A DNA stretch of 64,000 nucleotides from Blastocladiella emersonii ATCC 22665 (GCA_025594325.1 JANHCV010000001.1:3100001-3164000), one strand, 5' to 3'. Counted from the first letter of the stretch, positions 2,011-54,019 are shown. The notes: generated from the sequence alone by a model not told the origin. Made by a program: numbers and translations.

Positions 2011-3885
2011 TTAGACGACCTGGGCTTGAGCTTGAGCTTGAGCGATTCGAAGGCGATGCGCGTGGATCAGCAGCAGGTTGAAGGCGGCGTTCTTGTCGCG
2101 GCCGAACGTCGCGCGACACCGCGGGCAGTGCTTGGTGCCCCACGGCGTGCGCGGGCCCGTCTCGAGGTCGCACTCGCCGTCGGCGCGCTGCTGCGGCGTG
2201 GAGAGCGCGGAGCAGACGGCGCACCGCTTCGACGTGTAGTTTTCGTCGACGCGGGCGATCTTGGTGCCACGGCGCACGAGCTGGTCGACGAGCTTGGCAA
2301 CAGGACCACGACGATGAACACGAACGCCGCCGTAGTGGAACTGGTGGCCGATCAGGACGTAGGCGCCCTTGAACGCGTGCGTGAGCTTGTCGAACATCTT
2401 CTGCGCGAGCCCGAACGTGAAGAACCCGAGCCGGCCGACGCGCGTGCGCCGCACCTCGGTCAGCGTCGCGGCCTCGGCGGCCGCGTTGGCGTCGATCTTG
2501 GCGTGCAGGTAGGTGGCGGGGTCGGCGGCCGGGTGCGACGCCGCCGAGCGGTCCTCGTCGTGGTCGTCGAGGCCGTACTCGGCGCGCCACATGCGCGAGC
2601 GACTCGACTTGAGGCGGGCGCCCGTCTTGTGGTTGAACTCGTACACCGTGATCTGGTCGAAGCGGTGGTTGATGCCCTCGTTGGTCATGGCGATATCGAG
2701 CAGGATCAGGCGCACCGCGTCAAGCTCGGCGGCGCGAGCGTCGTCGTCGAGCGTGCCGTCGGCGTGGATCATGGCGATGCGCTCGAGGACGGCGACAATG
2801 TAGAAGAACAGGACGAGCGCGACCGTGAACGCCGTGATGGGCGAGTTGGCGCCGGGGTCCACGAAGGTGATGCGGTCGATGCCCTCGGCCACGTCGATGT
2901 CGCCAGCGTGGATGTCGGTACCGGCGCCGCGGCGACGAGCAACGCGATGATCAGGAGGGTGGGAGATGACGAGAGGTGGGTCATTATGGGCGACAACAGG
3001 AGGTTCGGGAGGAGATTCGAGTGCGAGAGCGAGGTGCTCGGCGGACGAGAGTGCATGAGTAGAAGGCGTAGACCGGGCGCGCTCGCACGGGTAGATGCCG
3101 TCGCGGTAAATGGGGACGCGGGCCGAGTACCCGTCCGTCTTGATGGACCCAATGAACTGGTTGACGGGCTGCGCGCCGGGTTGAAGGCGCCAGCACAGCA
3201 AGTGCTTGACGTACATGGACGACCAGTGCAACAGGTAGTCCCAGTAGGCCTTGGCGGTGCGGCCGTCCTGGAGCTCGTACGCGGCGACGCGGACACGAGC
3301 GGCGGCGACTGCGACAGGATCATCGTCTGCGGCGATGATGTCGTAGTCAGCGACAGGATGATCGGGCCAATCCATCCCCCGCGTCGGCGATGTCGGATCC
3401 CGGCTCTCGTAGGCCGGCATGCCGGCCACGGCCATGAGCGTCCACCTCGAGCTTGGGGACCATGCGCGGGCGCGGCGTCGAGGCCGACACGAGCTCGCGG
3501 TCGACAAAGTAGTCGCGGGCACGTTGAAGACGAACGAGGCGGTCGAGCCACGACAGGCCCTGGACGTCGATCTCGGCGTAGGCGCGGACACGGCGCTTGG
3601 CCATGCGGACGCGCGCCTCGCGCTCGGCCTTGGAGACCTGGAGCTCGCGCGGCAGGCGGCGCGGCATCGTCTCAACGGCCACCGCGGCGCGACGATCCGC
3701 CCAGAACGCCGTCGAGTTGGCCGCCTTGCGGGCAGCGGCGCGCGCGCGCGGTGACGGGTGAGGACGAGGGCCGCCACGGCCGGGCGCGTCGAGTACGGGT
3801 TCGGGAACCGGCGCCTGCGCCTGCGCCTGCGCGCGGCGCTCGTGGCCGGCGGTCTTGGCGGCGCGACGACGACGAGCACGGAGCG
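2011..3885 (-). CDS. Fanzor1 (TnpB-family RuvC RNA-guided endonuclease); the N-terminal part lies in a different frame (frameshift or intron near 3440)
   Basis: Motifs: FIGSIKTDGYSARV (Fanzor1 WED-type TDG motif, ~3130-3155); RuvC-I ITFVDPG (D 2857-2859); YVLIG (Gly at the canonical Glu site); rearranged RuvC-II VDENYTSKRC (E 2242-2244); zinc finger CAVC..CPRC; RuvC-III RDKNAAFNL (D 2095-2097); TAA at 2011. The in-frame ATG at 3435 gives 474 aa. Coding-like codon usage continues upstream in the 3347-3985 frame. Confidence 0.88.
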   Translation of the reverse strand, partial: RSVLVVVAPPRPPATSAARRRRRRRRFPNPYSTRPAVAALVLTRHRARAPLPARRPTRRRSGRIVAPRWPLRRCRAACRASSRSPRPSARRASAWPSAVSAPTPRSTSRACRGSTASFVFNVPATTLSTASSCRPRRRARAWSPSSRWTLMAVAGMPAYESRDPTSPTRGMDWPDHPVADYDIIAADDDPVAVAAARVRVAAYELQDGRTAKAYWDYLLHWSSMYVKHLLCWRLQPGAQPVNQFIGSIKTDGYSARVPIYRDGIYPCERARSTPSTHALSSAEHLALALESPPEPPVVAHNDPPLVISHPPDHRVARRRGAGTDIHAGDIDVAEGIDRITFVDPGANSPITAFTVALVLFFYIVAVLERIAMIHADGTLDDDARAAELDAVRLILLDIAMTNEGINHRFDQITVYEFNHKTGARLKSSRSRMWRAEYGLDDHDEDRSAASHPAADPATYLHAKIDANAAAEAATLTEVRRTRVGRLGFFTFGLAQKMFDKLTHAFKGAYVLIGHQFHYGGVRVHRRGPVAKLVDQLVRRGTKIARVDENYTSKRCAVCSALSTPQQRADGECDLETGPRTPWGTKHCPRCRATFGRDKNAAFNLLLIHAHRLRIAQAQAQAQVV

Positions 3886-5030
3886 TAGCTCGGCGTCCAG
3901 TCGAGCCCGTGCTCGTGCGCGATCCCCGCCCACCGCGGGCCCCAAGCGCGGGCCGCGTCGCGCGTGAGCAGGCGGCCGTCGGCAAACAGCGACACCTCGA
4001 CGCGGTGCGGCGGGCGCGTCGACTTGACGTCGGCGACCTCGGTCAAGAACGACGCGATGCGCTGGTGCACGCGCCGCGTGTCAGGGTGCCCGATCGCGAC
4101 GAGCGGGAAGACGTGAGGTTGGTCGACGAAGAGATCGTGCACCACGACCGAGGCGCGGCCGTGGTCGACGAACCGCGCGAGCTTGGCCGCGAACCGCACG
4201 TTGTCGTCCAGCAGCCGCTCGTCGGTGCCCGTCGACAGGTACACGGGCGGCCACGGGACACGCGCGCTGCCGCGGTCGAGGACCGGGCTGACCATGTGGT
4301 GCGTGGCCGCGATGCGCACCGTCTCTGGCCCGTGCTGGTCGCGGCCGACGTAGTAGTCGTACGCGCCCACGCCGTCGGGCCCGTTGCCCAGACTCGACTC
4401 GGACGGAGACACGACCACGTCGTACGGGTTGTCTTACGCGCTCGGGTTCTTGAACGTCAAGTCCGTCCACGGCGAGATGCCGACCACGCCCGCGGGCATC
4501 GGGTGGCCCTGCTCGCGCAGGAAGATGGTCGCCGAGAGCACCAAGTTGCCACCGGCCGAGTCGCCCATGAACACGATGCGGGACGCGGGGATCTGCTCGA
4601 CGTGCAGGAGGTAGAGGTACGCCGACGCGACGTCGTGGACTGCATCGGGGAAGACGTGCTCGGGCGCGAGGCGGTACTCGCTACGCCGTGAAGCGTCAGT
4701 TTCCTGCCGAGTCGTTGAAGGAGAGAGCGAGCGAGCGTACACGTTGAAGAAACGGCGACGACACAGCGCGGCCAGCTGCGCGGCAATCGGCGTGTATGCG
4801 GCCTTGCTGCCAAAGAGAAACGCGCCGCCGTGGACAAAGAGCACGACGCGGTCGCTGTCGATGGTCGGCGGCACGACCCAGTCGGCGCGCATCGTCCACG
4901 ACCGGATGCTCGGCACGTGCGAGTAGGCGCCCGGCTTGGCTGACAGCGGGCGTCAAGCAAGTCGAAGCGCGCACCGAGGCGCCCGTTTGAGACGCGAAGC
5001 GCCCGGCACGTGTGAGGTGGCGCGACGCGT
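3885..5030 (-). pseudogene. Alpha/beta hydrolase (HSL/abhydrolase_3 family), truncated and with a premature stop
   Basis: Motifs VVLFVHGGAF, EYRLAPE, GDSAGGNL, SPWTDL and HVFP. Introns at ~4682-4740 and ~4939-4974. In-frame TAA at 4434-4436 (NPSA*DNPYD). No ATG-bearing 5' exon was found, and similarity ends at ~3885. Confidence 0.8.
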
Positions 5031-41342: not shown

Positions 41343-42003
41343 TAGTCTCGGTGCCAGCTCGTTTCCGCTTACGGCAGGGGCGTCAGAGGGGTCACGTGGG
41401 GTCACGGCGTGCAGGCCGACGCGTAAACGAGTCTGGAGTCCAGTTTCACTCAGCAGTGCTTTTCTCGCCGATAATTACCCCCGGCGCGGTCTTTCGTCAA
41501 TTCCACCCCCACCGTTGATCTTTTGGCCTCGAGTCCTTCAGCAATCTCGTGCGAAACATCATGGGCTACGCGGATCTGCGGTCCGCTAAGCCTAAATCCG
41601 TACTGGTGCGGAGGATCAGGCGCGGGAAGCTCGGGCAGGCGTCGCGCTCGGAGGCCGACCCACCCCGTCCGGGCTCCCCACGAGGCCGATTTCACTGCGA
41701 TTGACAGTTTTCGAAAGCTCTCGGCCGGGGCAACTCGCTCGTACCCGCCACGTCTCAATCGAGTCAGGTTTGAGTGAACAGGGCCAAACCCCGACTTTGC
41801 CGCCTTGCTGACGTTGGGCACCTGATCTGATTGTTCCGTAACCGGTCTCGTTGGAAAGGGCAACTTATTTTGAGCGGATTAGGTATCGTTGCACCAAGTA
41901 GCTCGGTAGTGGGAGGTCGTTACGACGGTGGAAAGTGAGCGCCGATGGTCGGTCGGAGCGCGTCACCGCGATCACCTTTCGGGCGACCCGCTCGACGTGC
42001 CAC
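41343..42003 (+). repeat. Left terminal inverted repeat (about 660 bp, imperfect)
   Basis: Blocks matching the reverse complement of the right end: tagtctcggtgc (41343), aaacgagtctggagtccagtttcac (41425-41449), taaatccgtac, ttcgaaagc..gtacc, and ggtcggagcgcgtcaccgcga..gggcgacccgc..gtgccac (41947-42003). Confidence 0.8.
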
Positions 42004-42836
42004 CCAAACAACTTCCCCTCGGACCATGCTTATTCGAAAGAGCAGACTCAGGGCCATCGGCTGATACCCGAGAGATAGCTGCACTACACATAGTTAGCGG
42101 TCGGATCGTCCAAACGCGTCATGGGCTCTACCATGTCCCTGAGGGGTCTATATCATTTAACTCTTGGAATAGTTGGTGATCATAATCAACTACTATCATT
42201 TTGTACAGAGTTAGCAAACACTAACGACACATGGGATTAACCGGGCGGTCGGAACGGTGGCCCAGCGAACGGCCGTCGCGACCAACTTTTGACCCGAACC
42301 CATGACACCCACATCGGCCATTCCCCACTTTCTTACTGGTTCCCGAAAGCCGGAATCAAGGGCTATCTTTGAGCATCAACCGATATTGCAGGCGACGTGA
42401 ATAGGGGTGCAGCGACCTTGTTGTCGTTCATATGCTGTAGTACATGAAGTTCAAGTGGCATTTCACTCGGATTACTCTCTGGCGATAGCACTGAACTTGG
42501 ACCACCTGTGGGATGCAGCTCATGGAGGTGTACGCTTCGAGGGGTTGAAGAGTGGGCCAGAGAAGCACTGAGCGGTGAGCTTGGTCGCGCGCCATGATCC
42601 GAGCCCCGATCCTGATAAATTCGCTCCCCCTTCCCGCGCCGTCACGCCAACCATGACATTAACGAAAAGTTTTCTGTAATGCTTATAGCCGCTTCGAGAG
42701 TTGTGCTGTGTGGAATTCGAGTCCCTTGACGGCTGTTGACTTGGCGCGCGAAGCGGCAGTGGCGCGTCTCGTTTCAAGATGTGCTCGACTCGCCTCTGCC
42801 GCTCCCACGCTGTCAAATGAATGCTCCCCGGCAAAC

Positions 42837-45800
42837 ATGTCTAATCGAATGAAGACTACGCGCAACGGCAATAAGCCGACCGAGCCAACGTCGTCCCGGA
42901 CGCTGGCGTCGGCTCGTCCAGCTGCGCCTGTGGCTCGAGGGCGAGGTGCTGCAGTTGACAGGCCACCCGGCACCACCTCGCCCGAGCCCTCGGGATCGGA
43001 TTCCGAGCAACCTCTTGCTTCTTCTGTGCGAGCTAAACCGGGTCCGAAGGGGTATCCCCAGCAGCTGCTTGGACCAAAGTCAGCAACGGGCAAGCACGCG
43101 CGTGATTGGTTCTTGCACCGCCTCCTGAACCCTGCGGACAAGGATCCGGCTGTGGACACGGGCCAGCAGATGATGCTGGTCAAGTGCGTCCTCAAGCACG
43201 TTGATCCCGAGGCTTTCCGCGAGACCCTTGCGCTGCACTGTTCCGACATCTCGAGCTCGAGCTCCAACGTACCCCAGCCTACTTCTGAGCGCCGTCGCGA
43301 GTGCTTTCATGTCCCGTGGACCCAATACTTCCTGCGGCGGGGCAAAGACAGGGATCCTATCCTCGTTGCAACCGACATCTATCGCACCGAGCTCAAAAAC
43401 CTTTACACAGCCTCGGGCGACCTTCGTCAGAGCACCGCCGTCAAGATCTCGGAGCTCAACCTGTCCAACATCGCGCAACGCTGCGTCGGCTGCTGTCCCC
43501 AGCTTTTGCGGACATTCAACGTCATTACGGCGCCGTCATCGCAGGAGCGCGCTGCAGCCGAATGCGCGAAGCCTGGTTTCTCGTCCACTGGCGCGCCCGA
43601 GTTGCCGAAGATGTGGATCGTGGTTTTCATCCTGAATATCTTGTTCGCCTTGCACCGCCATGCTTGCGCCTTCCAAGTTGCTCTCGGTGGCCTCCTGTCG
43701 CTGAATGGCGCGACGCGGGCTGTGCTCGAACTGTTCAACTCGCTCAAGTTCACCGCTTCGAAATCGTCTGTTGCGCGGAGTCTCAAACATACGGCTCGGC
43801 ATAATGTGAAGCACGTGGACGATCTTGCCAAAAAACGGGACGCAGTGTTCGTACTTGCCATGGACAATGCCAACGTCTACAACCATAAGGCTGAGACGAC
43901 CTCGGCCAGCCGCTCGCACATACTCAATTGGACTAATGCTGTCCTATTTTCCGTTCCCGACTCAACCAATTTTCCGCTCTCGCCGAAGCAACGCGTGCTT
44001 CGTGATCGCCTTGTTGCTGTCTCCTTGGACCAGGAAGCACGAGAGCCTGGCAATCCGACGTATTCGCCCGAGCATGTCTGTGAAACTCTCGAAGACGAGG
44101 AATTCCGCATGCTTCGGATTGAAGACGATATCAAGCATAATCTCACGAAAAAAGGCGGGCTTGCTGCGCATCTTCGCAAAGATTTAGTTGGTGATCATCC
44201 GGAGACGCCTTTGCCCCGCTTGGATGAGGACGAGGACGAGGACTTGGACAAGGACAACCACAATTCCTTAGACGGCAGCGACTCTTTGGACAAACCGGAC
44301 TCCTCTGCAGATTCAGGCGTGAGTCTCGACGATGTGGATCTGGACGGTCTGCCCCCTCAATGCACGGCCCATTTTGCCAAAGACTTTGTTCCCCTGCCCG
44401 TCGAGGGTCATTCTGTCGATCTCATGGACAAGAACGAAGGTACTCGGGGAGGGATGTGCGAAGTCCTTGACAATCTACTTCATCGCTTCCGCAGCGTTGT
44501 CCATAGCACCGACGCGGATGCCAAAGAGGTTTGCGCCGACATTCTTGCAGTCTTCGGCGACGTGGGCACCTTTGTTATGGGTCATTCGGCCAAAAATGCT
44601 CGCTCGTCTGATGTTTGCGGGAGCCTTCAGTCTGTCCTGCCCATGTTCCTCGACTGGCATACCGCTCTCAATCTTGTGCGGATCACTGTTCATCGCTTCT
44701 GGGGTAGCCCCGAGGATCAGGTCTCATTCTCTTGGCTCAAATCGTTCTTTGATCGCAGGGAACTGTTGGACAGCAACACTTTGGACTACAACGCGGGGAA
44801 GCGTGCCATCAACGAGTTGCTAGAGATCCAACTTAACGCCATTTTCGAGTTTGAGCTTGGGCGCTTGCGCGGTCGCCCGCTTGACTATAAAGCGGAGCCG
44901 GTCACGGTCGACGAATTCAATGTGGTCCTCAAGCTGATTATGAAGTCCTGGGTCCTGTTCCAGCCGAGGTAAGCTATGTTGCCTGAGTGCGCCAACGTTA
45001 ACCAACTTGCTAACAAGACGCGTGCTCCAACAGTGCTGAACAGGCTCGTTCCACTGATCCTTCGCCTGGGAAGAAGAAGAAAAAGGGTGCGAAATCGTCG
45101 CCGCCATGCGCTGATCCATCTCAGCAGCATCGCACCTTCATCTCGCAATTCCTGCAGCATGCGCTTCTTCTTTGTGACTTCCAAGCTGCAATGCGTTCCA
45201 GTAATGGTCCACTGCTCATTCGGCTCTACCGACCAATTCTTATCCTTTTCCTTGGTTCCACTCACGGCAATTATCAGGGTGCCATTGTCAACTTGCTTTG
45301 AGGAATGGCGGGGGGCTTTTCCGAGTACGTCCAGCTTGTTGCGAAACATCTCCGGGTCGCTTACTCTGCGCATGGCACTGCAAAAGTTTGCCGCGCTCTC
45401 GATCACTTTGTCAAGGAAACGATCCGATACTTGAAGCTTTTGGTCTCGCGCCAGGGCAGCGCGTTGAGCTTCAAGCACACGCGGAGGATCATGCACGCAC
45501 TTTCCGTATTCCATCAATTCCACAACCAGCTGCTCGCCGCTCCTCGGGCCACTACTTGCGCTGCCTCGTCCAACAACACCCACCACGGCAAACCGTCCGA
45601 GCGAACGCTTATGGGTGCTATGAAACTCATGGGCGAGCGGCTCAAAGACCCCAAGCCCATGGATTGCGCAGTCGACTACCAGACGGTGGGTAAGCAGCGT
45701 CTCCACAACAAGTGCTACGTCGAGCGAAAGTGGAACAGCAACCCAACCAAACCTGTGGATGATGAACGTGGCATCGTCACCAATCTGGACGATAATGATG

Positions 45801-45838
45801 AATCCGACGGGGAGGAAGAAAGTGACATGGAGGAGTAA
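42837..45838 (+). pseudogene. AcademH transposase (DUF6589 family) with a premature stop; intron ~44969-45033
   Basis: LAMDNANVY..NWTNAVL; VFGDVGTF; FLDWHTALNLVRITVHRFWG; exon 2 FLQHALLLCDFQAAMRS..GSTHGNYQGAIVNLL*GMAG with in-frame TGA at 45299-45301; ALDHFVKETIRYLK. Confidence 0.78.
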
Positions 45839-46046
45839 TCAATAAATGCACTTTGGTTCTACAAATTACCAAGGAATTCGGTGGTCGGGTCGTGTCTCAC
45901 ATGTCACGTGTTTTCCAAACGCGTCTCACGGCTCGCTCCTTCGCTTGACGCAAGCCAACTCATTGCACAGATTGCATCTCAGAGGGACAAAAACAACTAA
46001 TTGGGTCAAATAACGCGTCGTATTCAATGGGCAGATGAGAAACAAC

Positions 46047-46541
46047 TCACCCGCGGGGGTCAGGCTGCAACGACTTGTACGGGTTTCGCTGGTACCCAGC
46101 GTATCCGCCAGTCGCGGGGTCGCGCGGAACCGGATGATATTGTCCTGGTGCAACTAATGGCTGCGTACTCATTTGCGCGTTTTGGACGTTGGGTTGCAGG
46201 TTTGTCGTGGGCCGCAGGGTCGCAGGAGGCGACGCGTACGGAGGTTGAGTCGGGACCTGGTAACCTTGGTAGTATAGCGGTAAGTAACCCATTGGCCAAC
46301 CTGGCCAACGATATTGGAATACACTCGGATAATTCGGCACGGGCGAGTAAGGCGGGCGTGGAACTTGCACTCCCGGCAAAATTGGAGCGATCGCTGGAAC
46401 AGCTGGAGCGTTTGACGGGGGAATGTACTGAGGCGCCGCATGTGGAGCCGAGGGTCGTGCAAAAGCTGGCTGGAGTACAGCAGAGGAGTGCGAAGGCTGC
46501 GTCACGGCTGGAACGAAGTCCTGCGCTGATGCGAGTGGCAT
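46047..46541 (-). CDS. P/Q/Y-rich low-complexity ORF inside the transposon (third gene or frameshifted helicase tail)
   Basis: 164-aa ATG ORF immediately after the helicase stop, in a different frame. Confidence 0.35.
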   Translation of the reverse strand: MPLASAQDFVPAVTQPSHSSAVLQPAFARPSAPHAAPQYIPPSNAPAVPAIAPILPGVQVPRPPYSPVPNYPSVFQYRWPGWPMGYLPLYYQGYQVPTQPPYASPPATLRPTTNLQPNVQNAQMSTQPLVAPGQYHPVPRDPATGGYAGYQRNPYKSLQPDPRG

Positions 46542-46548
46542 AGGCTGC

Positions 46549-48880
46549 TCAGACAGCAGCGGAGCACAAGGGCCGCGTCGCTGGTTGAGCAGAAGTCCAC
46601 GGTGAGGCGAGCGGGGTCTGTGGTGGTGAACAAGTCCGCGGAGCAGTAGACGAGCTGGAAGTGGTGCTCGCGGGCAAGGAAATAGCCGCTTGCGCCTTGG
46701 ACGTCGGCGCAGTGGAGCCTGTACCTGAGATCGGAAGCAGGTCCACGTCCATTGAATCGCGTTGTAACGTTGGCGGATTCAGAGTGAGCGCTTGGTCATG
46801 GGCTGCTCGGAGGGTCAAAAACAGACGCAGGTATTCATTGCGGAGCGGCGAGCGGTCAGGCAAGTAGTAAGGGTCCAACTTCATCAAATCAATCGAGTCG
46901 AGGACATGAGCATGTCGCGCCAGAAGCCAGCGAGTGCGAGTGGGAAGAATGTCCTCGGGGATGAGAGCAGAGTAACCCAGGCGCGACCTTGCGCTGAGCT
47001 TGTTAATGACGGCGATGGCGAGGTTATACAGAGTATCCACGACAAAGTCGACCTGGTGATCAAGGAGCCGCACCTTTGACATGCGCTTCAACTTGCCAGC
47101 AATGATTTGAGGAAATTTCAGTCGCGCACCTGGAGGCGGCTTCGCATTGAACGAACTCTCGATGAAAGCACGACCGGGACCCAAGTCCATGTCAAAGATC
47201 GGTGAGCAAACGTTGGAACAATCGTGAGATGGCGAGTTGCAGCAGAAGCCAAATTTGGGCTTCTCCTTGCGATGCCCGCCAAACTTACGCAACATGTACT
47301 CCCGTTAGCGTTGAGGACGGGAAACGGGGACCTTGGCGACGGTCGTCGAATCGTCGCTATTGGAATCTGGCCCGCCGGTCCGCGTGCGCTTTGCTGGGCT
47401 AGCTTCAATGCGAGCGGCCATGGACGCACACTTGTCCAAGGCGCGAGAGACACGGAAGCGCTGATCGACATCCTTTGGCGGGTCTTTTTTGCGTTTGGGC
47501 GACCAATAAAGCTGGATCACCTCGGCAGGTTTACCATCACGACCAGCGCGGCCATGAACCTGGACCATTTCCTCGCCCAAGGTCGGGTTGCCGATTGAGA
47601 GTACGACGCGAATGTTGTCCAGGTTGACACCCTACATCGCGTTTGGGGCGTATCAATCAATGTTGGGTCGATTGTGCACATGAGCGCGGCAAGTGTACAT
47701 ACGGTCCCAAAGGCATGCGAAGCAAAGAGAACCACGGGACGAGTCTGTGGATCACTTGTCATGCGATCGTACGTGCGCTTCTGATGCGCCGAGGTGTGCA
47801 CTCCGTGATAGACAGCGATGAATTTCTTGGCCTTCCCGTCGTTGAGTTTCCGCATGACATGGTAGAAGCAATTGACGAGATCTGGCGTGTAAGCGTATAC
47901 AAGGACTCGGGGCGCGTGCGCAACATTTTCCGGCCGCAGCGAAGCGATGAAGCGCCGCAACCACTCGTACAGCTAAACGGTCTCGTTGGTTAGTACGTGT
48001 CCTTCTCACAAGGGCCACGCGGAAGGCGACGTACGCCCGAATTAGGGTCGCGCATCATCTTCACTTGAGCCGCTTTGATGAAGCGGTAGAAGAGTTCAGG
48101 GCGGTCAAGCGGGCCGCGGATGCGTGTATATGGCGCGTGTCTTAGACCCAGAACCTGGTCCACGAGCAGATGCTCAAGTTCGGAACCGAGTGTTGCGGTC
48201 ATGGCAAGGACAGCGGCTCCAGAAAAGAGAGTCAAAGCGTGAGCGAGATGAGAGCACTGTTTCCGGAAAGTTGAACCAGCCGACCCCCTAGCGATCGCGG
48301 GACAGGGGAAGAGGTCACACATCGGCTGGTAGAACACATCGTCCGGGAAAAAAATCAATCAGGGGACGTACCACTTCGCGATCAGGTGGGCCTCATCAAG
48401 AACAATCGCGCTGACCTTGGGTGCGCGATCCAGTCGATGCCAGTTGCTGTGAAAGTGGTCGGCGAAATGTTCGGGCGTCATGAAGACGAGCTGAATCGCG
48501 CCCTCGGCGAGAGCGGTCATGTGCTCCTGGCGCTCCTTCTCAGTCGCATCCGACGACAAGGAGCAGCACTTGACGCCCTTCTCCTTGGCCTGGCGCACCT
48601 GGTCAAAGAGCAGGGCTCGGTACGGCGAGAACACGATAACGAGCATGCCGGGGCGCAGAAGGGTCATGGCGAAGAAGAGCATCGACTTTCCGTAGCCCGT
48701 GCGAGCAGTGAAGATCACTTTCTTTCCGTCCATGAGCTCAGAGAGCACCAGGAACTGGTCCGGGTGCAGCGACGCCACGCCAAACGTGGCACCGGCCCTT
48801 GAAATGCCCTCTCGGCGCATAATAGCTCGCTCGTCGGCCGACGGATCAGTTGCATCAGGTGCCATGGTCTGGTCGGACAT
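46549..48880 (-). CDS. RecQ-like SF2 helicase of the AcademH element; multi-exon, possibly disrupted
   Basis: Motif I ARTGYGKS, Ia VFSPYRALLFDQ, II IVLDEAH, W|GSAGSTFR, III AMTATL, V ASHAFGT|GVNL, VI QVHGRAGRDG; Cys cluster FCCNSPSHDCSNVC; in-frame TAA at 47305-47307. Confidence 0.85.
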
Positions 48881-49531
48881 GTGTGGGGAGATTGGGGGTG
48901 CCGAAGTCGCTGGGAAGTCAGTGAACGCCACTGCGCGAGGCGCGCCGTGACGCGACCATGCGAGGCGTCGTTCATGGCATGCTGGATCACAACTTCGATC
49001 AGGAACTCGACATGACGACTGTGGTGATTGAGAGACGTTGGAGACCACTTGGCGGTCATCGTGGACACGGTCAGCTGTGAACCTGACCTGCTTGTCCCGT
49101 CTCGCATTGGTTCAACCAACGCTGCAGCACCAGCAAGCACTCAAATAACACTTTTGACGACACAGATCTGCAGCCAAGTAACTTTCTTAGCGATTCTAGG
49201 AACTCAACTGGGTCCGAGTTCACCCAGGGATGAACGATAGCACGAACTGCCCGCGTCGGACAGGCGTCGCCGCGGTCGTGCTCCGCACCGTATTCTCAAC
49301 TCTTTTCGCGATTACCTGCTCGCAGGCGACAGGACAGTGACAGATCAAGTTCATGGTTTTCATTTAAGCTGAATTTCACGCGATGAACCCGCTCTGCGCA
49401 TGCAGTACAGCCGTACAAAGCTTGTCCCACCCTGTTACCCCAGAATGACAGTTTTTACGAGTTTCTTACTACCATCATGTTCAGCCCGTTGAGCTCTATC
49501 AGAAACCGTCGAGAACTCGGAAATCGACCAA

Positions 49532-50189
49532 GTGGCACGGTCGGCGGGTCGCCCGCAAGTCAGTCGCGGTGACGCGCTCCGACCCGACCTTTCGCGGACC
49601 ATACCCAACTCCCCACCGAGCGCACTCACTGCAAACTAGTACAGGGGTCTCCTGCAACACAATACAGCACATCCAGCTCGTTTGAGCGAGGTCACCACTT
49701 GGTGCCCGACCTCCACAGGCGCGCCGAGTCGATGCTCACCCCTTCTCGCCATCCCGTGGGCCGTCACATTTCAAATTGGTACCAGCGTGTAGCCTGGGAG
49801 AAGCGCTTTCGAATGTGCCCGGTCCGAGGCCAAACGGGCCATGGAGGTGCCGGTGCGACGTCGGCGCGGATCGGCCGAGGACCCGGACCCCCGCCGAGGC
49901 GGGACCCACCTCTCCAGCGTGATCGGTGCGGATTTACGGGGCCGAACCTGTACGAGCGGTTAGAGCGTGTAAAATCATGTCCATCGTCTGAGTCGACCGA
50001 GGCAACTTTTATTACGAGCGGGGGAGTAACGCGGCGCGAACGATTATCCGCGCGAAATACGTGGCGGGAGGGGTGGGGGTGAAACTAGATTCCAGACTCG
50101 TTTCCACGGTCAGCCCGAGCGCCACTTTGACGCGTTTGGCAGGTCCAACGGCGCGCCACACGTGGGAACGAATCTGTGCACCGAGGCTA
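49532..50189 (-). repeat. Right terminal inverted repeat (about 660 bp, imperfect)
   Basis: Reverse-complement blocks matching the left TIR; ends ..gcaccgaggcta followed by the TSD. Confidence 0.8.
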
Positions 50190-50374: not shown

Positions 50375-53300
50375 ATGTCGTCGTACGCGGCCGGGTTCGC
50401 GTCGCGCAGGCGCCCGCCCACCGCCGCGCCCGGCGGCCCAAACCTCCCGCCCCGCCCGCCCGCCCCCGCCGGCGTTGTCCCGCGCCCCGCTGTCGTCGGT
50501 GGCCCCGCCGCGACCATCGCGCCGGCCGTCGCAACGCCGCCGCCCGCCGCTGCTGTCTCGCTCCCGCCGGCCTCGCACACGACGTCGATCCCGGCCCCTG
50601 CCCTTGCACCACCCGCCCCTGCCCCGGGCGTCGATGTCGGCGCCATCTTCTCGACGCTCGCCCAGATGTTCGGCGCGCAGCAGGCCCAGGCCGCCGTCTC
50701 GCAGGCCTCGGCGACGAGCGACGCGGACCTCTCGGCCGGCCCGTCTCAGTCCGCGACCCCGACCCCGGCCTCCTCCTCCATGTCGACGAGCGCGCAGACG
50801 TCCAACCTGCAGCAGCTCCGCCTGCAGCTCCTCCAGCAGCAGCGCGCGGACAAGGCCGGCCCGGCTCTAGTTCCGGCCACGGTGCCCGCCTCGGCCGGGC
50901 TCGTCAACAACGGCGTGCCTGCGTCGTCGTCGCAGCCCCTTGATGCCGCCAAGAGCACCGCTCCCGCTGCATCGAGACCGACGCGCCGCATGTCGTCGGT
51001 CGCGGATGGCGCTTCGTCGACTACCGCGGGTCGCCCGCTGCCCGATCCCGACGCCATGGATGTCGTCCAGCCCGACGAGGACTCGCCCCGCGACGCGTCC
51101 GACCACGCCAGCCGCCCGCTGTCGTCGTACTCGCAGCAGCAGCCGTGCCAGTGCAACGGCCGCCTCGTCTCGCTCGCTGCCGTCGACCAGGTCGCCCGCT
51201 TCCCGCTGCCCAAGCTCTCGTTCCGCACCCACGCCGTGCGCGGCTGGCTCGCCACCTTTGAGCGCGTGTGCCGCCTCCACGACGTGCACCCCGTCGACAT
51301 GCCGCGCGCCCTCTTTGCCCACGTCGAGCCCGAACTCGCCGCCTGGCTCGTCGTGCTCCCGCTGCCCGAGGACGACCTCGGCAACCCGGCCGTCGCGCAG
51401 GACGAGCTGTGGGACGCCCACTACAAGCAGGCCATCCTCTCGCGCCTCGCCGTCGCGCCCGCCGACGAGCAGCTCCTCGTCGACAGCAACCTGCGCGCCA
51501 TGCGTCAGGACGCCCGCCCGATCTGGGAGTACCTGTCGGTGTGGGAGACCACCGTCCTCGCCCTCCAGCTCGCCGGCAGCGAAGTCTACATTGACGACTA
51601 CCTCCCGACCTTCTACCAGTCGCTAGACCCCAGCACCCGCGCCGCCCTCGGGGCGCGCCAGTACTCGACCGTCGATGCTCTCGTCGCTGACTGCCGACTC
51701 GTTGAGCTCGGCCTCCTCCGCGCTCCCGCCGACGCGTCCGCTGCTGCTGCGGCGACGATCCTCGGTGGTGCTGCACGCGCGCTTCCCCCGCCGCCGGTGC
51801 CGGCCCCTGCTCTGGCTCCGGCCCCTGCCGCAGCTGCCCCGCCGGCCGCACCTGCGCCTGCTGCAGCGATCCTCGCCTCGCCCGTTGCGACTCTGGCGCG
51901 CCAGACTTCGGGCACCGCCGACGTCGTCATAGTCGACGATGACGACGATGAGCCCGAGCCTGAGCCCATCCCCGCCTCCGCCGTTCCTGCTGCGGCAAAT
52001 CGGCCTCCTTCGCCGCGGCGCACCCCTGCGCGCTCGGTCTCGGTCACGCACGCCTCATCGTCTGTGGGCCGCGCCAGCTCGCCGCCCGCTCCCGCGCCCG
52101 GCCGCGCCAACAGCACGCCCGTGTCGATGCTCGCGGGCGCCGACCAGATCCCGCGCTCGTCCTCGCCGGCCGTCGATGCCGCGCTCGCGCCCAACCCCAG
52201 CAGCCGCGCCGCGTCCGCGAGCGCGTTCGCCTCGCCCGCGGTCGGTACCACCAAACCGCCGGCGCTGCCCAGCTCGCCCGTCAAGGCTGCCGCCGACTCC
52301 ACGGCCATGGCCTCGGACCTGGCCGCCCGCAAGAGCGAGGAGCCCGCGGCCGCCCTGGCGTCGACGGGGTTCAGCTTCATCGGCGCCGCGCGCCGCCGCC
52401 AGCAGGGTCTCGACCCGATCGTCCCCGTCATCGGCGCCGTCACCATGGCTGCCGTGCACACGCCGCCCGCCATCGAGCTGATCCCGGCGCCCACGTTCGG
52501 TATCGTCACGACTCCGGCCGCGGCTCCCGTACCCTCGGCGGTGGCCGTCTCGAACAACAACATGGACGTGGACCAGAGCCCCGTCGTCGGCGGCAACTCG
52601 AACGCGGGCTCGCGGCTGGGCTCGGGCGGGGGCGGGAACAACGATGATGATGACGACGACGCAAACTACGTGACCGAAGACGAGAGCGACTCCCGCGCCG
52701 CGCCTGGGACTACGCGCGAGTCGTCGACGTTCTCGCAGCACGCCAACGGCGGGCCCGTCAACACCGCCAACTCGGCGGCGGATGCGCTGCGGTCCAACAC
52801 GGCCTCGAAGGCCGCCGGGTCCACCACCTCGTCGTCGACTACCTCGCCGTCGCAGCCGGCCGCGGCGGACCGCAAGTGCCGTGTGCGCGTGGTCGACGAC
52901 TCGCTCCTGCGCGAGCACCGCGGGCCGCACCTGTGGGAGTTCACGACGGACGCGGCGCGCGAGTGGTGCGTGTCGTACGACGCGGACGCGGCGGGCCTGC
53001 GCACGCTGCTGCAGTCGATTGCCAAGTCGCTCGACGCCAACTTCGACATGGTGCGGTTCTGGGTCATGGTGCGGCGGTCGCCCGACAACCCGGACTCGCC
53101 GTACCTGCCGCGCCACCACACGGTGGTGCGCCCGCTCGACCTCAAGGGCTCGCTCGCCGCGCTCGGTAACCGGATCGGGTTCGACCTGGTCCCTGCCACC
53201 ACCACGGGGAACGGCCAGCCCGTCGTTGACATGTTCATGTACGCCGAGGTGCGCACCAGCGCCATGCCCGCGTTCCCGGCCATCCCCAAGTCGCTGCGCC

Positions 53301-53830
53301 CGTCGGACGAGTGGGGCGCCGACTCGGCGCTGCTGTTCGTCAAGTTGACGGACCCCAAGGCGCCTGGCGCGTCGACCCCGACCTCGGGTGGCGCCAGCGG
53401 CAGCACGGGGCTCCAGCGGTTCCTCGGCCATATCAACGTGCGCCGCGCCGACCGCGTCGCCGTGTCGCTCGCCGCCATCAACGAGCTCGTCGCGGCCGCC
53501 GGCACCGGCGCGTCGCCGCCGTTCCAGTACTTCCGCGAGGGCGCGCGCAGCCCGCCGCTCGCCACCAGCAAGACGTGGGCTGACCTCGGGTTCGTCACGG
53601 GCGACGTTCTCCTGGTTTCGGCCATCACGGCGCGTACCGCGAGTCCCGCGGCGGCAGCGGCCAAGGGACAGAACGGCAACAACGGCGGCAACAAGAACAA
53701 CGGCAACAACGGCGGCAACAAGAACAACGGCAGCAGCAGCAACGACATTACCAGCCGGCTCGGCAACGGCGGCGGGAACCAGCCGCCGGCCAAGCGGAAG
53801 CGGTCCAACAACTACAGCAGCAACAACTAG
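50375..53830 (+). CDS. Intronless ~1150-aa chimeric protein: Ty3/gypsy Gag-capsid-like domain (~51200-51720) plus USP7 C-terminal Ubl1-2-like domain (~52870-53620), separated by P/A/S-rich linkers
   Basis: Gag-like: GWLATFERVCRLH..LAAWL..LWDAHYKQAILSRL..LRAMRQDARPIWEYLSVW..FYQSLDPSTRAAL..YSTVDALVADCRLVE. USP7-like: VRVVDDSLLREHRGPHLWEF..VRFWVMVRR..TVVRP..MFMYAEV..ALLFVKLTDPK..FLGHINV..GDVLLV. Confidence 0.72.
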   Translation: MSSYAAGFASRRRPPTAAPGGPNLPPRPPAPAGVVPRPAVVGGPAATIAPAVATPPPAAAVSLPPASHTTSIPAPALAPPAPAPGVDVGAIFSTLAQMFGAQQAQAAVSQASATSDADLSAGPSQSATPTPASSSMSTSAQTSNLQQLRLQLLQQQRADKAGPALVPATVPASAGLVNNGVPASSSQPLDAAKSTAPAASRPTRRMSSVADGASSTTAGRPLPDPDAMDVVQPDEDSPRDASDHASRPLSSYSQQQPCQCNGRLVSLAAVDQVARFPLPKLSFRTHAVRGWLATFERVCRLHDVHPVDMPRALFAHVEPELAAWLVVLPLPEDDLGNPAVAQDELWDAHYKQAILSRLAVAPADEQLLVDSNLRAMRQDARPIWEYLSVWETTVLALQLAGSEVYIDDYLPTFYQSLDPSTRAALGARQYSTVDALVADCRLVELGLLRAPADASAAAAATILGGAARALPPPPVPAPALAPAPAAAAPPAAPAPAAAILASPVATLARQTSGTADVVIVDDDDDEPEPEPIPASAVPAAANRPPSPRRTPARSVSVTHASSSVGRASSPPAPAPGRANSTPVSMLAGADQIPRSSSPAVDAALAPNPSSRAASASAFASPAVGTTKPPALPSSPVKAAADSTAMASDLAARKSEEPAAALASTGFSFIGAARRRQQGLDPIVPVIGAVTMAAVHTPPAIELIPAPTFGIVTTPAAAPVPSAVAVSNNNMDVDQSPVVGGNSNAGSRLGSGGGGNNDDDDDDANYVTEDESDSRAAPGTTRESSTFSQHANGGPVNTANSAADALRSNTASKAAGSTTSSSTTSPSQPAAADRKCRVRVVDDSLLREHRGPHLWEFTTDAAREWCVSYDADAAGLRTLLQSIAKSLDANFDMVRFWVMVRRSPDNPDSPYLPRHHTVVRPLDLKGSLAALGNRIGFDLVPATTTGNGQPVVDMFMYAEVRTSAMPAFPAIPKSLRPSDEWGADSALLFVKLTDPKAPGASTPTSGGASGSTGLQRFLGHINVRRADRVAVSLAAINELVAAAGTGASPPFQYFREGARSPPLATSKTWADLGFVTGDVLLVSAITARTASPAAAAAKGQNGNNGGNKNNGNNGGNKNNGSSSNDITSRLGNGGGNQPPAKRKRSNNYSSNN
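53672..53731 (+). repeat. 27-bp coding tandem repeat (NGNNGGNKN x2)
   Basis: aacggcaacaacggcggcaacaagaac repeated exactly twice, plus a partial copy. Confidence 0.9.
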
Positions 53831-54019
53831 CTTGTGGGTATCATTATATTGCATCGCATACATGGATCTTTCTGCAGAGCACTCGCCGTCTCCTGAGTGT
53901 GGCCGCGTCCACGCCAACAGGCAAACGATAGGAGATGAGAACGTTGTATATGAACAATCCCGCGCACACGCGCTCCTCGCGGGCTCGACACGGCCGCAAA
54001 CACGCGCGAGCGAGTGCGG

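Follow-up and report, generated by a model that had tools for sequence, protein, structure and literature searches.

A Blastocladiales-restricted host gene for a two-module protein whose predicted C-terminal tandem beta-grasp domains are best matched by USP7 Ubl1-2

RESULTS

A single-exon gene encodes two segments of ordinary complexity

A 64,000-nucleotide stretch of the Blastocladiella emersonii ATCC 22665 genome (GCA_025594325.1, JANHCV010000001.1:3100001-3164000; here called the window) was analyzed. It belongs to the JANHCV assembly of B. emersonii described by Leonard et al. 2022 (PMC9730499). Positions 50375..53830 on the + strand hold a complete single-exon coding sequence for a hypothetical protein of 1151 amino acids (P0001). 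The open reading frame (ORF) starts with an ATG at 50375, runs for 1151 codons of protein without an internal stop, and ends with a stop codon whose last nucleotide is 53830. The NCBI annotation of the same record calls the identical single-exon product, and this is the only record of the exact protein. An earlier note, made from the DNA sequence alone, had proposed that this ORF fuses a domesticated Ty3/gypsy Gag capsid to the ubiquitin-like (Ubl) domains 1 and 2 of USP7. An entropy profile of the protein resolved two segments of ordinary complexity, segment A (aa 258-450; 51146..51724, +) and segment B (aa 830-1087; 52862..53635, +), set amid sequence rich in Ala, Pro, and Ser, and these are the two places in which that note had located its domains.

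The composition of the reading frame was compared with that of its neighbors. The G+C content at third codon positions (GC3) is 0.90 over the whole ORF (0.93 in segment A, 0.95 in segment B, and 0.85 in the linker), and the neighboring genes for a proteasome ATPase and mitochondrial L5 have GC3 values of 0.90 to 0.97. Relative synonymous codon usage (RSCU) in the ORF frame correlates with that of these neighbors at 0.94 to 0.95, compared with 0.25 to 0.70 for the five other frames. The longest stop-free run in 2000 shuffles of the same DNA was 770 codons, which is shorter than the ORF (analytic P of ~1e-7). The description of the locus as a single uninterrupted, intronless ORF with host-like codon usage was therefore correct. 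Two antisense ORFs overlap the gene, one of 620 aa (52055-53917, −) and one of 342 aa (51613-52641, −), with antisense-frame RSCU correlations of 0.25 to 0.64; rather than genes, they are by-products of the GC richness of the coding strand.

Hallmarks of a mobile element were looked for at the locus and in the protein. No second copy of segment A or B was found in the window by tblastn, and no direct repeats of at least 40 nt, which would be candidates for long terminal repeats (LTRs), were found between 41 and 55 kb. The protein contains neither a CCHC knuckle (C-x2-C-x4-H-x4-C) nor a D[TS]G motif, and it has no Pfam match to a protease, reverse transcriptase, or integrase. The absence of CCHC, protease, pol, and LTR sequences, which had been noticed by eye, thus held in the motif scan, the Pfam search, and the repeat search alike.

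The A-linker-B architecture is conserved in Catenaria anguillulae

Relatives of the protein were sought with phmmer among 1.84e9 protein representatives. In a control run beforehand, 100,000 synthetic sequences of linker composition gave zero matches, and aa 258-1087 were therefore used as a single query. Two matches were obtained, the protein itself and P0002 (E of 2.8e-5). P0002 (ORZ31957.1; 666 aa, partial) is a hypothetical protein of Catenaria anguillulae PL171, which also belongs to the Blastocladiales, and it shares its cluster with a near-identical hypothetical protein of that strain, P0003 (ORZ39668.1; 713 aa). In pairwise BLASTP, segment A aligned to residues 87-251 of P0002 (28% identity; E of 3e-14) and segment B to residues 412-653 (24% identity; E of 4e-4). 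The order of segment A, linker, and segment B is identical in the B. emersonii and Catenaria proteins, and the latter stop just past segment B. Word-index searches with the whole protein, region A, or region B returned the protein itself only (candidates of 633-2014 aa), and back-translated patterns of both domain alignments found no relatives in viral and metagenome contigs. No paralogue was present in the 1.84e9 library or in the window, and by the library search the gene is single copy in both genomes.

The Catenaria gene contains an intron of 98 or 99 nt at codon 406/407 of P0002, six residues ahead of segment B. In the copy with the 98-nt intron, the two exons lie in different frames, so that segments A and B are joined only by splicing. 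Because the Catenaria orthologue has the same domain order as well as this intron, the A-linker-B architecture is older than the split between Blastocladiella and Catenaria, and the gene behaves as a host gene. Its single-copy state, the Catenaria orthologue, and the absence of LTRs, a CCHC knuckle, protease, and pol together mark the family as a Blastocladiales-restricted host gene and not a mobile element. An LTR retrotransposon, whether intact or decayed, was accordingly rejected as an identity for the locus, there being no LTRs, nucleocapsid (NC) knuckle, pol, protease, or extra copies. The search of relatives thus recovered an orthologue with A-linker-B order, in agreement with the earlier description of a domesticated-type host gene carrying both parts in one ORF.

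The Catenaria assembly contains two near-identical copies of the orthologue on different contigs (L002:5442-7540 and L003:8001-10241). Both loci are flanked alike, by genes for mL59, an S4-domain protein, otubain, DPM3, and PPTA, and the gene models upstream of the mL59 gene differ between them. Since all neighbors are shared, the two loci represent haplotypes or a recent segmental duplicate; two haplotypes are the more probable, the assembly then being non-haploid. When the Catenaria locus was compared with the window by tblastx, the A domain was the sole real match and the rest was noise; there was no shared synteny, and no Catenaria neighbor occurred in the window.

Segment B is modeled as two tandem beta-grasp domains best matched by USP7 Ubl1-2

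Sequence searches with segment B did not identify a family. Neither the USP7 families PF12436 and PF14533 (in either species) nor the ubiquitin-type and Rad60-SLD families PF11976, PF13881, and PF00240 were matched in Pfam-A at E<=10. USP7 was not found among PDB sequences by phmmer or with a two-species profile, nor among the 1.84e9 representatives. No Pfam match to MATH or UCH (the USP catalytic domain) was obtained anywhere in the 1151 aa. A USP7 orthologue, i.e., a deubiquitinase, was rejected as an identity for the protein, the MATH/TRAF and USP catalytic domains having no Pfam match.

Segment B was modeled with AlphaFold2 from a three-row alignment. The model had a mean predicted local distance difference test score (pLDDT) of 52 and a predicted TM-score (pTM) of 0.49, and its secondary structure consists of two beta-beta-alpha-beta-beta units. 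A Foldseek search of this model against the PDB gave 26 matches at E<=1e-3, of which the best 22 were all USP7 Ubl chains. The USP7 matches had E values of 6.5e-7 to 2e-5 and a probability of 1.00, and they covered 217-233 columns at 14-15% identity. Because they include constructs comprising only Ubl1-2 (4pyz, 9a0x, and 5gg4_C/D), the match is to Ubl1-2 and not to Ubl4-5. Ranked below USP7, at E of ~1e-3, were single ubiquitin-fold domains, namely those of SUMO1, NEDD8, an archaeal ubiquitin, and SLD2 of NIP45 (E of 6.8e-4). The string LF[VL]K[LM].DP, a presumed counterpart of one in USP7 Ubl2, does not vary within the family. On the basis of the model, segment B is best described as two tandem beta-grasp domains, conserved in Catenaria, for which USP7 Ubl1-2 is the best structural match. 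A protease-free, USP7-type tandem Ubl in this segment is thus supported at the fold level, and the proposal of a USP7 Ubl1-2-like module (~830-1085) without MATH or catalytic domain stands at that level, with all 22 best matches to USP7 Ubl and a model pLDDT of 52.

Segment A is modeled as a conserved all-alpha domain with a possible capsid-like fold

Every Gag-like motif string that had been listed for the N-terminal module is present in the ORF. These strings are W291-L-x-x-F295-E296, A322-x-W324, L373-x4-Q378..I383-x-x-Y386, F413-x3-L417..R422, and T432-x3-L436-x7-E444. Their residues are mostly invariant in Catenaria, with a core of W..FE, W, RAMRQ....Y...WE, and F...L. As a mark of Gag, the motif set was not confirmed above chance at the sequence level. 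No Gag or capsid family (PF03732 or related) in Pfam-A was matched at E<=10 in either species, and hmmscan at the same threshold with the whole of P0001 and with its parts returned no family at all; with the Catenaria proteins, the sole matches were to DUF3224 and DHQ_synthase, which lay below threshold and are attributed to chance. No Gag or Gag-Pol protein appeared among the 1.84e9 representatives at E<=1e-3, and no capsid was found among PDB sequences by phmmer or with a profile of segment A. The PDB sequence searches, whether with single sequences or two-species profiles, returned only matches at chance level, for example to agmatinase, kinesin, and an acyl carrier protein.

In the AlphaFold2 model of segment A (pTM of 0.57; pLDDT of 72, with the five models agreeing at 64-72), ~170 residues form an all-alpha domain of about nine helices. 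Foldseek gave nothing at E<=1e-3 against the PDB. The best PDB match was a chain of the HIV-1 capsid (CA) hexamer (E of 0.5, probability of 0.38, and TM-score of 0.28), and 21 of the 50 listed PDB matches were HIV-1 or SIV CA, with alignments that span both proteins end to end (TM-scores of 0.22-0.32). Interspersed with CA were the globular tail of myosin V, designed helical repeats, eIF2B-epsilon, and others, and chains of Ty3, Arc, dArc, and PEG10 were absent from the 50 listed. Among the predicted viral structures of BFVD, a fungal Ty3/gypsy element, Penicillium waksmanii metavirus 1, supplied the best match with its ORF1, or Gag (E of 0.19, probability of 0.75, and TM-score of 0.34), and a few retroviral Gag proteins came next (E of 2.7-5.7). 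That a retroelement capsid ranked first in two libraries is notable given the prior hypothesis and, since the matches are not significant, suggestive only. In the structural comparison that the earlier note had suggested for ~275-450, the best matches were thus retroelement capsids, none of them significant, and no Ty3 or Arc chain was among the 50 PDB matches listed. Identity with a Ty3/gypsy Gag capsid, as proposed, was not confirmed: Pfam, the protein library, and PDB sequences gave no match, and the Foldseek E values of 0.5 and 0.19 are not significant. Segment A is accordingly treated here as a conserved helical domain that is a candidate for a retroelement capsid-like fold.

Linker motifs and flanking regions

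Outside the two segments, a few short features of the protein were distinguished. The N-terminal region (aa 1-257; 50375..51145, +) is of low complexity by the entropy profile, is rich in Ala, Pro, Ser, and Gln, and is little alignable to the Catenaria proteins. In the linker, a conserved hydrophobic-then-acidic motif found by regular expression (aa 515-530, DVVIVDDDDDEPEPEP; 51917..51964, +) aligns to VAVMCSDEDEDEGEP in both Catenaria proteins. The hydrophobic core and acidic residues of DVVIVDDDDDEPEPEP and VAVMCSDEDEDEGEP look like a SUMO-interacting motif (SIM), judged by the published SIM consensus. A second short linear motif, G-x-P-V-N-T-A-N (aa 792-799; 52748..52771, +), was recognized by alignment with Catenaria in the disordered linker just ahead of segment B. 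PVNTAN is exact in P0001 (794), P0002 (401), and P0003 (448), and the surrounding linker is otherwise unalignable. In P0002, G-x-PVNTAN occupies aa 399-406, and the Catenaria intron directly abuts it. We know of no described motif that matches PVNTAN.

Two features lie beyond segment B. An Asn/Gly-rich tail, absent from the Catenaria proteins, corresponds to 2.3 copies of a 27-nt unit that is repeated perfectly in tandem (53672..53732, +), as a repeat search revealed. The basic PPAKRKRS, which resembles a nuclear localization signal (NLS), is present at aa 1137-1144 (53783..53806, +) as had been noted, and it is not conserved in Catenaria.

Genomic surroundings

The window is GC-rich (0.53-0.72) and holds ordinary fungal genes. 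To the right of the ORF are genes for a proteasome AAA-ATPase (two exons) and mitochondrial ribosomal L5, and farther off are genes for ferrochelatase, a nucleotidyl-transferase, a leucine-rich repeat protein, WD40 proteins, and others. Upstream of the ORF lies a low-GC island (41951-49584; 0.53-0.59 versus ~0.66) bounded by 53-nt inverted repeats (41951-42003 and 49532-49584; 83% complementary). The island contains a 754-aa DUF6589 ORF (42708-44972, +; E of 1.6e-14) and a fragment of a RecQ/DEAD-type helicase (48359-49048, −). The island resembles a 7.6-kb DNA transposon with terminal inverted repeats, the end of which lies ~790 nt upstream of the ATG of the ORF. A tie between the ORF and this neighboring transposon was considered and rejected on account of that distance and of the different base composition. 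At the far left of the window (2014-4080, −), a stretch of 689 aa is free of stops and host-like in GC3 (0.82), and its C terminus matches a Cas12f1-like TNB zinc ribbon (PF07282; E of 3.8e-9); it is a candidate eukaryotic TnpB/Fanzor-like gene.

DISCUSSION

We consider it probable, at about 60%, that 50375..53830 is a single-copy host gene of the Blastocladiales (Blastocladiella and Catenaria) for a long, largely disordered, noncatalytic adaptor or scaffold with two folded modules, the C-terminal one being USP7 Ubl1-2-like. The analysis shows that the gene is real, that both modules are conserved along with the order in which they stand, and, through a model of low confidence, that the tail folds like the double Ubl of USP7. 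Partner docking, SUMO binding, a nuclear location, and any capsid ancestry we infer only. By analogy with USP7, the C-terminal double Ubl would most likely dock partner peptides. The putatively two-lobed helical domain of ~170 aa may serve as a second interaction or self-association module and may descend from a retroelement capsid. The conserved linker motifs, i.e., the SIM-like stretch and G-x-PVNTAN, could provide further docking sites, and the species-specific KRKR is the sole feature that hints at a nuclear location in B. emersonii.

Several observations weigh against this interpretation. Sequence methods applied to Pfam, the PDB, and the 1.84e9 library all failed to tie segment B to USP7, and the model of that segment (pLDDT of 52) has a TM-score to USP7 of ~0.31 and a root mean square deviation of ~10 Å. 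A low TM-score and a high deviation are expected from a poor model with uncertain interdomain geometry, yet they limit the USP7 claim. The PDB is poor in other tandem-Ubl structures, so that "USP7" may here mean just two tandem beta-grasp domains, and effectively no more than two distinct sequences entered the alignments. For the pair of Catenaria copies, whose coding sequences were recovered by removing the annotated intron from the genes of the database proteins, 12 synonymous and 16 nonsynonymous changes give an omega (dN/dS) of 0.43, which with 28 changes is uninformative. The NLS-like tail is species-specific, the Catenaria proteins having no basic cluster.

Other explanations differ in how much of this evidence they accommodate. 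That the locus is an artefact, either a spurious long ORF of GC-rich DNA or two adjacent genes read as one, is very improbable. Chance long ORFs do arise in such DNA, as the antisense ORFs of 342-620 aa illustrate, but GC3 stays at 0.85-0.95 along the entire frame, linker included, the codon usage correlation of 0.94-0.95 is far from the <=0.70 of the other frames, the ORF outruns every one of the 2000 shuffles, and a single Catenaria gene model, its frame restored by the intron, contains both segments in identical order. A different identity for the tail would make the protein a SUMO-pathway factor like those of the RENi family (Rad60/Esc2/NIP45), with a C-terminal SUMO-like pair and an upstream SIM, modulating SUMO conjugation or genome stability. 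The architecture of RENi proteins resembles that seen here, in which a conserved SIM-like stretch (VVIVDDDDDE) lies upstream of two Ubl domains at the extreme C terminus, and the single-domain Foldseek matches include SUMO-like domain 2 of NIP45 (E of 6.8e-4) and many SUMO1 chains. The USP7 chains, however, score ~1000-fold better and span both domains, and no Pfam Rad60-SLD or ubiquitin family was reached even at E<=10. Each Ubl here is ~110-130 aa long, whereas SUMO-like domains are ~75-80 aa, and the LF[VL]K[LM].DP string, presumably akin to one in USP7 Ubl2, is invariant in the family. A RENi-like factor is a real rival on architecture and weaker on evidence than the USP7 type; we regard it as unlikely.

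The origin of segment A is the second point on which explanations diverge. It may be a domesticated Ty3/gypsy Gag CA, co-opted before Blastocladiella and Catenaria separated, that was joined to the USP7-type double Ubl and acts by Arc/PEG10-like self-assembly or as a retroelement restriction factor. Nothing in the analysis spoke for or against a role as a USP7 decoy or as a restriction factor, both of which the earlier note had suggested. The motif set with its core invariant in Catenaria, the all-alpha model of about nine helices in ~170 aa, and the first rank of a retroelement capsid in both the PDB (HIV-1 CA) and BFVD (metavirus ORF1, probability of 0.75) are consistent with this origin. 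So are the 21 of 50 listed PDB matches to HIV or SIV CA over the whole domain, and the other by-eye call of the earlier note, the USP7 Ubl, held up. These matches are nonetheless not significant (E of 0.19-2.8; TM-scores of 0.25-0.34), HIV CA is heavily overrepresented in the PDB, and Ty3, Arc, dArc, and PEG10 are absent among the 50 listed. Neither Pfam at E<=10 in either species nor the 1.84e9 representatives at E<=1e-3 yielded a Gag family, the profile search of PDB sequences was empty, and there is no NC knuckle. We put capsid ancestry of segment A at roughly one in three. The competing account, to which we give slightly short of even odds, is that segment A is a lineage-specific helical domain without capsid ancestry, that the protein is an ordinary taxon-restricted Ubl protein, and that the Gag-like motifs are coincidental. 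It agrees with the negative outcome of all sequence tests for Gag and with a Foldseek list that has no significant match and in which unrelated helical folds (the myosin V tail, designed repeats, and eIF2B-epsilon) stand among the capsids. It leaves aside that a capsid ranked first in two independent libraries, one of these being a fungal Ty3/gypsy Gag, and that the motif core is conserved.

For the adaptor or scaffold that we favor, the novelty would lie in a USP7-type tandem Ubl in a nonenzymatic, lineage-restricted architecture. Ubl pairs of the USP7 type are known from a deubiquitinase, in which they serve in regulation and partner docking, and a free-standing copy on a disordered, nonenzymatic scaffold would be a new use of the module. 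The gene would also offer a handle on ubiquitin- or SUMO-linked regulation in the Blastocladiomycota, a poorly studied early fungal lineage. It is possible, if doubtful, that segment A is a true retroelement capsid, co-opted before the two genera separated and joined to the USP7-type double Ubl across a boundary that is still an intron in Catenaria. If so, neither a Gag co-option in an early-diverging fungus nor a capsid-Ubl fusion would have a precedent; the gene would extend Gag domestication in fungi beyond the Dikarya (PMC8321522), add a new fusion partner, and possibly link capsid-like assembly to the ubiquitin/SUMO machinery. If segment A is not derived from a capsid, the gene is a lineage-restricted orphan with one recognizable module and of modest interest.

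Comparison with known systems places the protein among three groups. A systematic survey identified 14 deep gag co-options in eukaryotes, of which three are fungal (Crtg12-14), all in Dikarya and with an origin in Ty1/Copia or Bel-Pao; fusion to a host gene, KELP or PEX14, occurs in two of the 14 (PMC8321522). No co-option in that survey is in the Blastocladiomycota or fused to Ubl domains, and its main text does not mention ubiquitin (PMC8321522). Like such genes, the gene described here is a single-copy host gene without NC, protease, or pol, has a CA-sized helical domain with Gag-like motifs for which the top fold matches are capsids, and carries a fused host-type domain, as in Crtg14-PEX14 and Crtg10-KELP (PMC8321522). 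Unlike them, its segment A is not recognizable as Gag by sequence, and its fold matches are nonsignificant.

With RENi proteins (Rad60, Esc2, and NIP45/NFATC2IP), it has in common a SIM-like motif and, after it, a C-terminal pair of ubiquitin-fold domains, and NIP45 SLD2 and SUMO1 are among its single-domain structural matches. It differs from RENi proteins in having no Rad60-SLD Pfam match, larger Ubl domains, far stronger matches to USP7, an additional conserved helical domain, and a much longer chain.

No fungal example of a USP7-type Ubl pair standing on its own came up in a full-text search of the literature, an absence that is not proof. USP7 Ubl1-2 is a docking site for partner peptides and binds basic peptides of ICP0, GMPS, UHRF1, DNMT1, and RNF169, as is reflected in the titles of the matched PDB entries. 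The acidic patch of Ubl2, to which basic K-x-x-x-K partner peptides bind in USP7, may be kept only in part in segment B. Segment B resembles the Ubl1-2 part of the USP7/HAUSP HUBL region (USP7_ICP0_bdg, PF12436; 4pyz, 2ylm, and 5c56) in being modeled as tandem beta-grasp domains of similar size. In contrast to USP7, the protein lacks the MATH domain, the USP catalytic domain, and Ubl3-5, has no detectable sequence similarity to it (~14% identity in structural alignments), and carries its Ubl module at the end of a disordered, nonenzymatic chain.

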